Source of the DNA: Octopus sinensis
Lineage: Eukaryota
Length of the DNA: 6,297 nt
Assembly (NCBI RefSeq): GCF_006345805.1
Contig: NW_021829408.1
Span: 1 to 6,297, forward strand
Direction of reading: 5' to 3'
How positions within the stretch are numbered: the first letter of the stretch is position 1; every line of letters begins with the position of its first letter. The notes below the pieces were generated by a model. That model was not told the DNA's origin, made no database searches, and saw nothing but the letters and a program-made list of their open reading frames with translations. Below are positions 1 through 6,297 of this stretch, piece after piece. The position numbers and the translations under genes were made by a program.

Positions 1-252
1 ACCTAACCCAAAAACCTTACTCTAACCCCTTACCCTAAAACCTAACCCTAAACATGACCCAAAAATCGAACCCGAACCCTAAAACCTAACACTAAAACTT
101 AACGGTAAACATAAGCCCTAAACCTTAAACGCTAAACCCAAACCCCTAACCCCTAAACCCTATCCCAAACCTAAAACCTAGCCCTAAAACCTAACCTAAA
201 TCCTAAACCCTAACCCTAACCCCTAACCCTAAAACCTAACCTTAAAATCTAA

Positions 253-520
253 CCTAAACCTAACCTTAAAACCTAACCCTAAAACTACTCTAAACCTAAC
301 CCTGAAACCGAACCCTAAAACCTAACATTAAAAACCTAACCCCAAACCTGACCCTAACCCTAAAACCTAACCCTAACACTAACCCTAAACCTAACCTTAA
401 AACCTAACCCTAAAACTACTCTAAACCTAACCCTGAAACCGAGCCCTAACCCTAAAACCTAACATTAAAAACCTAACCCTAAACCTGACCCTAACCCTAA
501 AACCTAACCCTAACACTAAC
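253..520. repeat. Tandem duplication, 131 bp + 137 bp
   Basis: 253-383 and 384-520 share CTACTC (285/416), CCTGAAACCGA, ACATTAAAAA and CCTGACC. They differ by two substitutions and one extra CCCTAA. The segment is single-copy in monomer B (~3190-3280). Confidence 0.85.
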
Positions 521-572
521 CCTAAAACCTAACCCTAAAACTTAACCCTAAAACCTAAACCTAAAACCTACC

Positions 573-660
573 CCTGAAACCTAACCCTAACCCTAAAACC
601 TAAACCTAGCCCTAAACCTGAAACCTAACCCTAACCCTAAAACCTAAACCTAGCCCTAAA
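573..660. repeat. Perfect 44-bp tandem duplication (CCTGAAACCTAACCCTAACCCTAAAACCTAAACCTAGCCCTAAA)x2
   Basis: 573-616 equals 617-660. The A-to-B offset drops from 2830 to 2786 (44 bp) across this interval. Confidence 0.85.
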
Positions 661-1287
661 CCTAGCCCTAAAACCTAACCCTAAATCTAAAACAACCCTA
701 ACAATAACCCTAAAACCTAGCCCTAAAACCTAACCCCAACCCTATAACCCAACCCTAACCCTAAAACCTGACACTAAAACCTAACCCTGAAACCTAAACC
801 TAGAACCTTACGCTAAAACCTAACCCTAAAACCTAACCCTAAACCAAACCCTAAAATAGAACCCTAACCCAAAAACCTAACCCTAAAACCTAAACCTAAC
901 CCTAAAACCTAACCCTTACCCTAAACCTAACCCTAAAACCTTACTCTAACCGTAAAACCTTACCCTAAAACCTGATGCTAAACAGCCTAAACCTTAGACC
1001 CTAAACCCTAACCCTCACCCTAAAACATAACCCTAAACACTAACACTGAAACCTGGCCCTAAAACCTAACCCTAAAGCCTAACCCTGAATCCTAAACACT
1101 AACCATAAAACCAAACCCTAAAACCAAACCCTAACCGTAAAACCTAACTCTTAACATTACCCTAAAACTAAAACCCAACCCTAAAACCGAATTCTAAAAT
1201 CTAACCGTAACCCTCAGCTGACCCTAACCGTACACCCTAACCCTAAAACCTAGCCCTATAAACCTAACCGCAAAACCAACCCTAAAA

Positions 1288-1352
1288 CCTAATCCTAAAA
1301 CCTAATCCTAAAACCTAATCCTAAAACCTAATCCTAAAACCTAATCCTGAAA
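1288..1352. repeat. Local expansion of variant 13-mer: (CCTAATCCTAAAA)x4 + CCTAATCCTGAAA
   Basis: Five consecutive 13-bp units carry the same C>T variant. The homologous site in monomer B (4109-4134) has only two units. Confidence 0.9.
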
Positions 1353-2944
1353 CCTAACCCTAAAACCAAACCCTAAAATCTAAACCCTAACCCTGAAACC
1401 TAACCCTAAAACCTCACCCTGAAACCTAACCCTAAAACCTAAACCCTAACCCTAAAACCAAACCCTAAAAACCAACCCTGAAACCTAACCCTAAAACCTT
1501 ACTTTAAAACCTAACCCTAACCCTAAAACGTAACCCTAAAACCTAACACTGAAACCTAACACTAAAACCTAACCCTAAAATCTAACGCTAACCCTAAACC
1601 CAGACCCCTAACCCCAACCCCTAAAACCTAACCCTAAAACAACCCTAAAACATAACGCTAACCCAAACCCATAAACCCTAATCACTGACCCTAACCCCAA
1701 TCCTAACCCTAAAACCCAACCCTAAAACCTAACGCTAAACATTAACCCTAAATCTTAAACCCTAACCCTAACCCCTAATCACTAACCCAAACCCTAAAAC
1801 CTAAACCTAAAATCTAAGCCTAAAACCAAACCAAAAAATCAAACCCTATAACCTAACCAAAACCCTAAAACCGTACCCTAAATATAACCCTAACCCTAAA
1901 ACCCAACCCTAAAACCGAATTCTAAAAACTAACCTCAACCCTAACTGTAAACCCTAACCCTAAAACCTAGCCCTGAAACCTAAACCTAAAACCAACCAAA
2001 AATCTAATCCAAAAACGTAACCCTGAAAGCTAACCCTAAAACCTAACCCTAAAGCCAAACCCTAACCCAAAAACCTAACCCTAAAACCTAGCCCTAAAAC
2101 CTAACCTTAAAACCTGACCCTAAATCCTAAACCTTAACTCTAAAACGTAACCCTAACCTCTAACCCTAACACTAAAACCTAAACCTAAAACCTAATTCTA
2201 GAACCAAACCGTAACCCTAACCCTAACCGTAAAACCTAACCCTAAAACCTAACCCTAAAACCAACCCTAAAACCTAACCTAAAACTAAACACAAAAACCT
2301 AACCCTAAAACCAAACCCTAAAACTAACACTAACCCTAAAACCTAACCCTAACCCTAAACCTAACCCAACCCTAACACTAAAACCTAACCCTAACACCTA
2401 ATCCTAACCCTAAAACCCAACCTAACCCTAAAACCTAACCCTTAAAACCAAACCCTGAAACCTAACCCCAAAACTAAACCCCAAAACCTAACCCTAAAAC
2501 CAAACCCTAACACTAACCTTAAAACCTAACCCTAACCCTAACCCTAAAACCAAACCCTAAAAGCTAACCCTAACACCTAACCCTAGCCCTAAAACCTAAC
2601 CCTAAAACCTGACCCTAAAACCTAATCCTAAAGCCTAACACTAACCCTAAAACCAAGCCCTAAATCCTAAACCCTAACACTAAAACCTAACTCTAAAACC
2701 AAATCCAAAAACCTAACCCTAACACTAAAACCTAAACCTGACCCTCACCCTAACCCTAAAACCGAACCCTAACCCCTAACCCTAAAACCTAAACCTAGAA
2801 ACTAACCCTAAAACCTAACCTTAACCCTAAAACCTAACCCTAAACCTAACCCTAAAAACGAACACTAACCCTAAAACCTAACCCTAAACCTAAACCTAAA
2901 CCTAACCCTAAAAGCGAACACTAACCCTAAACCCTAACGCAAAA

Positions 2945-5572
2945 ACCTAACCCTAAAACCTTACTCTAACCCCTTACCCTAAAACCTAAACCTAAACATG
3001 ACCCAAAAACAGAACCCGAACCCTAAAACCTAACACTAAAACTTAACGGTAAACAAACCCTAAACCTTAAACGCTAAACCCTAAACCCTACCCAACCCTA
3101 AAACCTAACCCTAAAACCTAGTCCTAAAACCTAACCTAAATCCTAAACCCTAACCATAACCCCTAACCTTAAAATCTAACCCTAAAACACAAACCTAACC
3201 CTGAAACCGAGCCCTAACCCTAAAACCTAACCCTAAACCTGACCCTAACCCTAAAACCTAACCCTAACACTAACCCTAAAACCTAATTCTAAAACCTAAC
3301 CCTAACCCTAACCGTAAAACCTAACCCTAAAACCTAACCCTAAAACCAACCCTAAAACCTAACCCTAAAACTTAACCCTAAAACTTAAACCTAAAACCTA
3401 CCCCTGAAACCTAACCCTAACCCTAAAACCTAACCCTAACCCTAAACCTAGCCCTAAAACCTAACCCTAAATCTAAAACAACCCTAACACTAACCCTAAA
3501 ACCTAGCCCTAAAACCTAACCCTGAAACCTAACCCCAACCCTATAACCTCACCCTAACCCTAAAACAACCCTAAAACCTGACACTAAAACCTAACCCTGA
3601 AACCTAAACCTAGAACCTAACCCTAAAAACTAAACCTTACCCTAAAACCTAACTCTAAAAACCTAACCCTAAACCTTACCCTAAAATAGAACCCTAACCC
3701 AAAAACCTAACCCTAAAAACTAACCCTAAACCTAACCCTAAAACCTAACCCTTACCCTAAATCTAACCCTAAAACCTTACTCTAACCGTAAAACCTTACC
3801 CTAAAACCTGATGCTAAACGTAGCCTAAACTTTAGACCCTAAAATCTAACCTCTAACCCTAAACCTTAACCCTCACCCTAAAACCTAACCCTAAACACTA
3901 ACACTGAAACCAGGCCCTAAAACCTGACCCTAAAGCCTAACCCTGAATCCTAAACACTAACCCTAACCCTAAACCTAACCGTAAAACCTAACCTTAACAC
4001 TGACCTTAAAACAAGCCTAAAACCCAACCCTAAAACCGAATTCTAAAATCTAACCGTAACCCTCAGCTGACCCTAACCGTACACCCTAACCCTAAAACCA
4101 ACCCAAAACCTAATCCTAAAACCTAATCCTGAAACCTAACCCTAAAACCAAGCCCTAAAGCCTAACCTTAACCCTAAAACAACCCTGAAACCAAGCCCTA
4201 AAACCTAACCATAAAACCTAACCCTAAATCCTGAACCCTAACCCTAAAACCTAGCCCTAAAACCTAACATTAAAACCTAACCCTACATCCTGAACACTAA
4301 CCTTAAAACCGAACCCTAACCCTAAAACCAACCTTAAAACCTAATCCTAGAACCTAACCCTGAAACCTAACACTAACCCTAACCCTAAAATTTAACCCTA
4401 AATCCTAAACCTAACCCTAAAACCTAACCATAAAACCTAACCTTAAAACCTAACCCTAACCCTAAAATCTAACCCTAAAACCTAACCTTAACACTGACCT
4501 TAAAACAAGCCTAAAACCTAACCCTAAAACCAAACCCCAACGCAAAACCTAAAACCAAACCCCAACTAACCCTAAAACCTAACCCTAACCGTAAAACCTA
4601 ACCCAAAAACCTAACGCTAAATATAAACCGTATACCTTAAACCCTAAAACGTAACCTCTAAACTCTGACCCTAACGCTAAATCCTAAACCCTATCACTAA
4701 AACAAAACCCTAAAACCTAACACTAAAACCTAACCCTAACCCTAAAACGTAACCCTAAAACCTAACACTGAAACCTAACACTAAAACCTAACCCTAACCC
4801 TAAAACCTAACCCTAAAATCTAACGCTAACCCTAAACCCTAAACCCAGACCCCTAACCCCAACCCCTAAAACCTAACCCTAAAACAACCCTAAAACAACG
4901 CTAACCCAAACCCATAAACCCTAATCACTAACCCTAACCCCAATCCTAACCCTAAAACCCAACCCTAAACCCTAACCCTAACCCCTAATCACTAACCCAA
5001 ACCCTAAAACCTAAACCTAAAATCTAAGCCTAAAACCAAACCAAAAAACAAACCCTATAACCTAACCAAAACCCTAAAACCGTACCCTAAACATAACCCT
5101 AACCCTAAAACCAACACTAAAACCGAATTCTAAAACCTAACCGTAACCCTCAACCCTAACTGTAAACCCTAAACCTAAAACCTAGCCCTGAAACCTAAAC
5201 CTAAAACCAACCAAAAATCTAATCCCAAAACGTAACCCTGAAAGCTAACCCTAAAGCCAAACCCTAACCCAAACACCTAACCCTAAAACCTAGCCCTAAA
5301 ACCTAACCTTAAAACCTGACCCTAAATCCTAAACCTTAACCCTAAAACGTAACCCTAACCTCTAACCCTGAACCTAAAACCTAACCCTAAAACCTAAACC
5401 TAAAACCTAATTCTAGAACCAAACCGTAACCCTAACCATAACCGTAAAACCTAACCGTAAAACCTAACCCTAAAACCAACCCTAAAACCTAACCTAAAAC
5501 TAAACAAAAAACCTAACACTAAAACCAAACCCTAAAACTAACACTAACCCTAAAACCTAACCCTAACCCTAA
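2945..5572. repeat. Higher-order repeat monomer B (collinear with monomer A 1-~2356; carries extra sequence around 4135-4740)
   Basis: Same ordered markers as monomer A. Offset is 2944 at the start, ~2750-2860 through 4070, then ~3210-3245 after the inserted segment. Homology is lost at the CCCTAA run beginning 5561. Confidence 0.88.
4490..4725. repeat. Dispersed ~240-bp satellite module, copy 1 (absent from monomer A)
   Basis: Ordered markers AACACTGACCTTAAAACAAGCC, CCCCAACGCAAAA, CCGTAAAACCTAACCCAAAAA, CCTCTAAACTCT, CTATCACTAAAACAAAACCC are shared with 5641-5905. Confidence 0.8.
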
Positions 5573-5603
5573 CCCTAACCCCTAACCCTAACCCTAACCC
5601 TAA
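5561..5603 (-). repeat. Short canonical (CCCTAA)7 run inside the satellite
   Basis: Seven consecutive hexamers (one is CCCCTAA); the longest canonical run I could find in 1-6043. Confidence 0.85.
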
Positions 5604-5640
5604 AACCTAACCCTAAAACACAACCCTAAAACCTAACCCT

Positions 5641-5905
5641 AACACTGACCTTAAAACAAGCCTAAAACCTAACTCTAAAACCAAACCCTAAAACTAACAC
5701 TAACCCTAAAACGTAACCCTAAAACCAAACCCCAACGCAAAACCTAACCCTGTAACTAACCCTAAACCTAACCCTAAAACCTAACCCTAACCGTAAAACC
5801 TAACCCAAAAACCTAACCCTAACCCTAACCCTAACCTCTAAACTCTAACCCTAACGCTACATCCTAAACCCTATCACTAAAACAAAACCCTAAATCCTAA
5901 CACTA
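5641..5905. repeat. Dispersed ~260-bp satellite module, copy 2
   Basis: Same ordered markers as 4490-4725 (offset 1151 at the start, 1180 at CTATCACTAA 4691/5871), with several indels. Confidence 0.8.
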
Positions 5906-6043
5906 AACCTAACCCTAAAACCGAACTCTAACACTTAAACCTAACGCTAACCATAAAACCTAACACTAACGCTAAAACCAAACCCTAAAACCGAACAATC
6001 AACCTAACCCTAAAACCAAACCCTAAAACCTAACCCTAAAACC

Positions 6044-6055
6044 TTTGGGTTAGGG

Positions 6056-6096
<41 letters not shown>

Positions 6097-6297
6097 GGTT
6101 AGGGTTGGTTAGGGTTAGGGTTTGGGTTAGGGTTAGGGTTAGGGTAGGGCTAGGGTTAGGGCTAGGGTTAGGGTTAGGGGTAGGGTTAGGGTTAGGGTTA
6201 GGGGTTAGGGTTAGGGTTGGGTTAGGTTAGGGTTAGGGTTAAGGGTTAAGGGTTAAGGGTTAGGGTTAGGGTTAAGGGTTAGGGTTTAGGGTTTAGG
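6044..6297 (+). repeat. Canonical (TTAGGG)n telomeric tract, G-rich strand running 5'->3' to the window end; probable chromosome/contig terminus
   Basis: By hand 42 units, 25 of them perfect TTAGGG; variants TTTGGG, TTTAGGG, CTAGGG, GTAGGG, TTAAGGG, TTGG, TTGGG, TTAGG, TAGGG, TTAGGGG. Orientation matches a right-hand chromosome end. TTAGGG is used by vertebrates, many invertebrates, many fungi and trypanosomatids, so it is not taxon-diagnostic. The repeat call is secure; terminal status is inferred. Confidence 0.93.

Follow-up and report, generated by a model that had tools for sequence, protein, structure and literature searches.

A spacerless switch from an inverted telomere-like satellite to a TTAGGG-type array: a candidate neotelomere

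Overall architecture of the locus

How did a satellite derived from telomere repeats and written on its C-rich strand come to be joined directly to a TTAGGG-type array written on its G-rich strand, and does the joint mark a capped chromosome break or a product of the sequencing library? The whole stretch of DNA analysed here (the window, 6,297 bases) consists of telomere-like repeat, and it is best explained as the end of assembled sequence from a eukaryote with TTAGGG-type telomeres. Its main parts are:

1–6043, minus strand: telomere-derived 13-bp satellite (left arm), unit CCCTAAAA plus CCTAA on the plus strand, the G-rich strand being the minus strand
6043–6046, no strand assigned: polarity-switch junction, …AAAACC/TTTGGG…, by direct reading
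6044–6297, plus strand: TTAGGG-type array (right arm), G-strand running 5′ to 3′ to the end of the window, by TRF and unit parse

TRF resolves the window into two arrays, a 13-mer over 1–6044 and a 6-mer over 6047–6293, and the autocorrelation peaks at lag 13 in the left arm (0.66) and at lag 6 in the right arm (0.82). CCC occurs 411 times in the left arm and not once in the right, whereas GGG is absent from the left arm and occurs 41 times in the right; likewise, CCCTAA is found 295 times on the left and never on the right, and TTAGGG 28 times on the right and never on the left. The polarity switch is absolute and far beyond chance. The original prediction, which placed a degenerate 13-mer array on its C-strand to the left and a hexamer array on its G-strand to the right, is borne out by TRF, autocorrelation and motif counts, and its placement of a spacerless switch at 6043/6044 agrees with the sequence itself and with the CCC and GGG counts.

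At the junction, which reads …CCCTAAAACCTAACCCTAAAACC/TTTGGGTTAGGGTTAGGG…, the switch lies between 6043 and 6044; the spacer is 0 nt long and no adapter-like insert is present. T6044 can be assigned to either arm, because the 13-mer phase, if continued, predicts a T at this position, and the arms therefore have 1 nt in common. The overlap would grow to 2 nt if the last left unit were the common CCTTA variant, which occurs ~21 times in the left arm; the arms share at most 1–2 nt. The satellite breaks off in the middle of a unit, at an arbitrary phase of the 13-mer. On the other side, T6046 occupies the place of the A in a canonical first repeat, so that the first right unit is TTTGGG, a small oddity. 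The 60 nt on either side of the junction have a hairpin potential of −36.8 kcal/mol (z = −6.4), which is the trivial outcome of a C-strand array and a G-strand array facing each other.

The left arm is a genuine satellite of the hexamer lineage

The left arm starts in mid-array at the edge of the window and comprises ~465 units (TRF consensus ACCTAACCCTAAA, 469 copies, 71% matches and 11% indels). It is composed of 37% C and 3% G, and the spacing of its C-runs alternates between 5 and 8. Each 500-nt bin departs from the 13-mer consensus by 16–20 edits per 100 nt (56% of them substitutions), and along these bins no gradient of degeneracy, as would be found in a former telomere, runs toward either end. 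No ORF of ≥60 aa and no Rfam family was found in the left arm, and the 13-mer repeat places a stop codon in all frames every 39 nt. With 6043 nt of a single polarity, made up of degenerate telomere-like repeats on the kilobase scale, the left arm has the features of a het-ITS-like satellite. Its affinity can be read from the interspersed hexamers and from a few more regular stretches:

5561–5603, minus strand: pure CCCTAA hexamer island in the satellite, by regex scan
2530–2547 and 5817–5837, minus strand: further pure CCCTAA islands, by regex scan
6001–6043, minus strand: last 43 nt of the satellite, near-perfect 13-mers with 1 mismatch in 43 nt

The islands reveal that the satellite is related to the hexamer repeat of telomeres. 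Moreover, (CCCTAA)2 occurs 43 times in the left arm and (CCCTAAA)2 only once, and the satellite therefore belongs to the hexamer (TTAGGG) lineage, like the right arm. It follows that both arms plausibly derive from one genome, as judged from their repeats. The same counts rule out a cross-species chimera with a left arm from a TTTAGGG-type organism. The terminal stretch at 6001–6043 ties with 516–558 as the most regular part of the 6-kb left arm; this may be a coincidence, or it may reflect young units beside the junction. Elsewhere, at 1281–1345, five identical variant units (CCTAAAACCTAAT) stand in tandem; nowhere else do even three identical 13-mers follow one another, and the run points to local homogenisation within an array diverged by 16–20%.

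Self-BLAST revealed a higher-order duplication of ~3 kb within the left arm, with an identity of 82–91% between its copies:

1–2394, no strand assigned: higher-order copy 1 of the satellite, by self-BLAST, with EcoRI sites at 1189 and 1917
2945–5616, no strand assigned: higher-order copy 2 of the satellite, by self-BLAST, with EcoRI sites at 4038 and 5125

The matching blocks are 1–588 against 2945–3523 (83%), 390–1598 against 3162–4466 (82%) and 1756–2394 against 4966–5616 (91.5%), the last being the best preserved. Over its 667 columns, 13 substitutions, 3 single-base indels and 4 indels of whole units (7, 8, 13 and 13 nt) separate the two copies. The faithful recurrence of variant units in the paralogous copies indicates that the left arm is real DNA that has been read accurately; the single-base indel error is capped at ~0.25% per copy by this comparison. 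An origin of the 13-mer in nanopore repeat miscalling or base-calling noise is ruled out, as the paralogs reproduce the variant units. The four EcoRI sites of the window (0.01 expected by chance) all stand in one conserved context, AAAACCGAATTCTAAAA, and they mark matching positions of the ~3-kb copies, 1189 corresponding to 4038 and 1917 to 5125, although their spacing is unequal (728 and 1087 nt). The last of the four lies at 5125, exactly as had been stated. The higher-order structure reaches to ~125 nt from the junction. No internal paralog predicts how the satellite would continue if unbroken, as these last ~125 nt resemble the rest of the window at background level only; the nearest internal paralog of 5661–6043 is 78.8% identical, again the background level.

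The right arm is a variant-rich TTAGGG-type array

In the right arm TRF finds 40.8 copies of GGGTTA over 6047–6293 (period 6, 89% matches, 7% indels). The unit parse gives 42 TTAGGG-type units, with the G-strand facing outward on the plus strand up to base 6297, as at a terminal telomere; the window ends inside this array, and its size is not a round number. Canonical TTAGGG accounts for 24 of the 42 units (57%), and the word ‘canonical’, under which the right arm was first described, is therefore too strong, all the more as the first unit is TTTGGG. The variants (43%) are TTAAGGG (four times), TTTAGGG, TTTGGG, TAGGG, CTAGGG and TTAGGGG (twice each) and TTGG, TTGGG, TTAGG and TTTAGG (once each), so that most non-canonical units are homopolymer-length variants.

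Matching the 254 nt of the right arm to a perfect array takes 18 edits, of which 5 are substitutions and 13 are indels; the final third of the arm is the worst, with 9.5% edits, all of them indels. The contrast with the left arm is pronounced: the 254 nt contain 13 single-base indels, whereas the 667 columns of the two left-arm paralogs contain 3, and the density in the right arm exceeds the ceiling derived from those paralogs more than 20-fold. Two readings fit this noise, namely, real telomere variant repeats, or a tail resting on fewer or noisier reads. In the latter case few reads may underlie the junction, which lies just 254 nt before the end. Nevertheless, the noise does not prove an artefact, since published scaffold ends of a real assembly, tabulated for Diadema setosum, carry similar telomere noise.

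Routes to the joint that the anatomy excludes

The two arms are not mirror images of each other. The right arm scores 207 against a perfect hexamer array and 112 against the reverse-complemented left arm, which excludes a fold-back inversion or other palindromic origin; the 74% identity between the reverse-complemented left arm and the right arm is generic, and the inverted repeats that span the junction are 70–86% complementary, none of them being centred on it. Fold-back inversions and inverted-duplication terminal deletions, together with their technical look-alikes, resemble the locus in their point-like strand switch and hairpin potential but differ in being true palindromes; in the window, the period-6 right arm is no reverse complement of the period-13 left arm. 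On the same grounds we rule out both a missed SMRTbell adapter and a nanopore template-complement read.

Homology-driven routes, such as break-induced replication, template switching and recombination, are excluded by logic. A C-rich 3′ end is unable to anneal to a C-strand telomere template. A C/A-rich 3′ end anneals to G-strand templates only, and its extension would yield more C-strand. An inversion as the source merely shifts the same non-homologous C-to-G joint elsewhere. With homology-driven and fold-back routes excluded, the joint must have been made by telomerase seeding or by end-joining, either in vivo or in the library. The proposal that a telomere was added or captured onto a C-rich 3′ end thus survives in its homology-free mechanism, but a library chimera remains its rival.

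Finally, the order of the arms cannot arise from an end-to-end fusion. Fusion-type ITS, exemplified by the head-to-head relic at human 2q13-q14, are alike in that telomere-type arrays of opposite polarity abut; they differ in that both arms are hexamers and in their order, TTAGGG followed by CCCTAA, which is opposite to that of the window, just as the original prediction held and the motif counts confirm.

Searches for related sequences

The junction pattern (a 19-mer and a 15-mer separated by a gap of 0–30) has no match in bacterial and archaeal genome contigs or in metagenome contigs, and a 28-mer across the junction has none in viral contigs. A 26-mer dimer of the satellite unit is absent from viral contigs and from bacterial and archaeal genome contigs, and has 14 matches at unrelated metagenome loci; this dimer has no exact copy in the window, so that the dimer scans are blind to the window itself. 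The window has no megablast match among plasmids, and an exact look-up of three of its short ORF products returned no record. In the literature, the 13-mer as a named satellite, in twelve rotations and on both strands, gave chance matches only (primers and noisy telomere listings), and no 13-bp telomere-like TTAGGG satellite was matched.

Several of these metagenome contigs carry comparable repeats. The closest in sequence is L014, which begins (1–352) with 350 nt of the same 13-mer consensus on the C-strand and continues into unique AT-rich DNA. Its array is ~80% identical to the window, a value equal to the internal background of the window itself, and it may belong to the same satellite family. 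Neither its flank nor that of L004, another contig with the 13-mer motif, contains usable ORFs.

Other contigs are comparable in architecture. The short metagenome contig L013 (1–1426) opens with degenerate CCCTAAA blocks on the C-strand (~800 nt), passes through ~520 nt that are unique and closes with a perfect (TTTAGGG)16; it is an example, from another eukaryote, of an inverted telomere-like array lying near what appears to be a terminal telomere. L007 (2500–4800) and L009 (1–2040) represent the same 4.46-kb region on opposite strands in two metagenome samples, at 99.9% identity. It is a subtelomere-like patchwork in which short TTTAGGG-type blocks of alternating polarity, with abrupt switches, are separated by short unique spacers, and it contains a CCCTAATTAGGG switch. 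In L005 (60–490), a unit of ~170 nt is repeated in tandem, each copy carrying a telomere-like inverted repeat, C-strand first and then G-strand. The string CCCTAAAACCTTT from the junction of the window also occurs in the first copy, probably by coincidence. L013, L007/L009 and L005, which come from TTTAGGG-type eukaryotes, show that it is not rare for inverted telomere-like blocks to lie near putative telomeres. Nevertheless, none of the related contigs described here provides a second example of a long inverted satellite fused directly to a terminal tract.

A proposed neotelomere on a break inside the satellite

As a feature of the sequence the structure is real, and both its polarity and its near-lack of microhomology fall within known behaviour; the biological reality of the junction hinges on read-level evidence. 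At least 6 kb of old telomere-derived satellite has its G-rich strand facing inward, and a TTAGGG-type array is attached to it with the G-strand facing outward. The most likely reading of this arrangement, which we favour tentatively and at somewhat less than even chances, is a neotelomere formed on a break inside the inverted satellite. A double-strand break would have arisen within the satellite, and telomerase would then have used the bare 3′ end, …AAAACC(T), to seed TTAGGG repeats, with no match to its template; alternatively, a telomeric fragment would have been attached to the break by end-joining (telomere capture). By either route, chromosome healing or telomere capture, the product would be a neotelomere that now forms the chromosome terminus. 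We infer the break, the enzyme that capped it and the position at the chromosome end. Large blocks of telomere-like satellite (het-ITS) co-localise with chromosome breakage (PMC6410037), and such known breakage hot spots offer a reason why the break should have fallen inside the satellite. The left arm resembles the het-ITS described, for example, in Chinese hamster (PMC6410037) as a kilobase-scale degenerate telomere-like block, of a kind that is fragile and found at breakpoints; it differs in its unit, a 13-mer (8 + 5) rather than degenerate hexamers.

Sequenced neotelomeres, known from human terminal deletions and from cancer, provide the closest parallel: non-telomeric sequence passes abruptly into (TTAGGG)n, with 0–3 nt of microhomology as the usual extent, and a template-complementary seed is not required, only ~10% showing a template match of 2–4 nt (PMC11293586). 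The junction …AAAACC/TTTGGGTTAGGG, with T6044 common to both arms, has the orientation, the abruptness and the 0–4 nt of microhomology by which neotelomeres are recognised (PMC11293586). Its sharp, spacerless switch, standard orientation and 0–2 nt of microhomology match the published definition. Since few neotelomeres show a template match, a seedless C-rich end is not exceptional, and the lack of template complementarity, initially regarded as unusual, is therefore ordinary (PMC11293586). Two features set the window apart from these cases: its substrate is a telomere-derived satellite in inverted polarity, so that the joint doubles as a C-to-G strand switch, and its terminal position and distal loss are ones that we infer. 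The idea that this polarity reverses anything established is outdated as well, since ‘outward’ telomere fusions of the form 5′-(CCCTAA)n-(TTAGGG)n-3′ have been published (PMC10762111) and inverted blocks occur in L013 and in L007/L009.

Further points in favour of a neotelomere are that the array extends to the last base of a window whose length is not round, as one would expect of a telomere-ended contig, and that the satellite is genuine, accurately read and stops mid-unit at an arbitrary phase, with both arms plausibly from one genome. Several points weigh against it. No second locus was found, the junction string being absent from the three collections searched; the 254-nt tail with its high indel density is as expected if it comes from one or a few noisy reads; the right-arm variants do not thin out distally, unlike those of well-studied telomeres; and the first unit is TTTGGG rather than TTAGGG.

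If the neotelomere is real, a chromosome broke within a telomere-like satellite and was capped without template complementarity, which would give the neotelomeres known so far mainly from cancers and clinical deletions a counterpart that arose naturally and possibly in the germline. An inverted telomere-like array would then lie directly beneath a functional telomere. The locus would thus bear on the fragility of telomere-like satellites, on the seeds accepted by telomerase or end-joining, and on end protection by shelterin-type proteins bound to an inverted array.

A stronger version of the same idea is that the terminus is genuine and fixed and that its architecture is used biologically, either through recurrent or programmed breakage inside the inverted satellite with telomere seeding on an unmatched C-rich 3′ end, or through an inverted satellite that normally lies directly under the telomere; we give this only a slim chance. 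In the second case, a kilobase-scale imperfect inverted repeat could pair with the telomere and form a hard-wired fold-back or t-loop-like cap. In programmed DNA elimination, as known from Ascaris, other nematodes and ciliates, breaks acquire telomeres with few or no demands on their sequence, which is the feature that the window may have in common with it. These lineages differ in using other telomere repeats (TTAGGC, TTGGGG and others). Programmed chromosome fragmentation or DNA elimination, raised in the original prediction, finds no support in the sequence beyond compatibility.

Alternative explanations

The main alternative, unlikely but to be taken seriously, is a technical chimera. Here, a piece of the abundant 13-mer satellite would have been joined to a fragment sheared within a telomere, by blunt-end ligation during long-read library preparation or because two fragments ended up in one unsplit read, and the assembler would have kept a 254-nt single-read overhang as a tail. 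A homology-free, spacerless joint is what ligation gives, and the excess of noise in the tail over the left arm is characteristic of single-read overhangs that were left unpolished. Telomere-read pipelines treat reads in which C-strand and G-strand repeats are mixed as probable chimeras and drop them (PMC12871981), and no second instance of the junction was found in the collections searched. By contrast, the tail ends in telomere repeats and is oriented exactly as a true terminus would be, an orientation expected from only half of random ligations; no adapter remnant is present; the scaffold ends of Diadema setosum show that such noise also occurs at the ends of real assemblies; and fold-back and missed adapter, which are the most frequent structured artefacts, have been excluded above. 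If the junction is a chimera after all, it is a warning against counting short noisy telomere tails on satellite contigs as assembled chromosome ends.

Less probable still is a subtelomere typical of the lineage, in which one ancient non-homologous event was spread by subtelomeric recombination and the architecture is now normal at many chromosome ends. The satellite is old and large, as expected from this scenario, with its 16–20% divergence, higher-order duplication and local homogenisation; the right arm resembles the variant-rich proximal zone of a telomere rather than freshly made repeats; and inverted telomere-like blocks near terminal telomeres are seen in other eukaryotes (L013 and L007/L009). 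However, the architecture is known here from a single end, the other contigs with the 13-mer (L014 and L001/L004/L011) adjoin unique DNA and not a G-strand telomere, and the junction string is absent from all collections searched.

We consider it quite improbable that the sequence just stops within a patchwork of alternating polarity, at a TTAGGG-type stretch that forms one of its short internal telomere-like islands. Such an interstitial block would account for an array of just 254 nt with 57% canonical units, and L007/L009 and L005 are patchworks in which C-strand and G-strand blocks abruptly replace each other. The left arm, however, keeps one polarity for 6 kb with zero GGG and is no patchwork, and the position of the window end, within an outward G-strand array and at a non-round length, suggests a natural contig end.

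The weakest candidate, and a very improbable one, is an ALT-type outward telomere fusion, in which two terminal fragments, one broken within the 13-mer as a subtelomeric satellite of the same polarity and the other within a hexamer tract, are joined at their broken inner ends into a small linear, possibly extrachromosomal, molecule with a telomere at both ends: its polarity equals the published ALT-associated pattern of C-strand followed by G-strand repeats, attributed to fold-back of the C-strand 3′ end or to ligation of terminal fragments at broken ends, of which the ligation route is non-homologous and requires no homology (PMC10762111), and the polarity of the left arm is ordinary when viewed from the left chromosome end, but the published fusions are somatic, occur on DNA fragments, have hexamers on both arms and favour TA/TTAA microhomology, whereas the window has a 6-kb left arm of period 13 with higher-order structure and a CC/TTT junction, no hexamer telomere is present at its left edge, and an acentric product would not normally attain assembly-level coverage.

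Regarding the remaining contigs with the 13-mer motif, L001 (1–760), L004 (1–700) and L011 (1–730) represent one locus recovered from three metagenomes, with a mean column identity of 95%. Patches of the motif alternate there with a repeat of ~230 nt, and the organism that carries this locus is presumably widespread.
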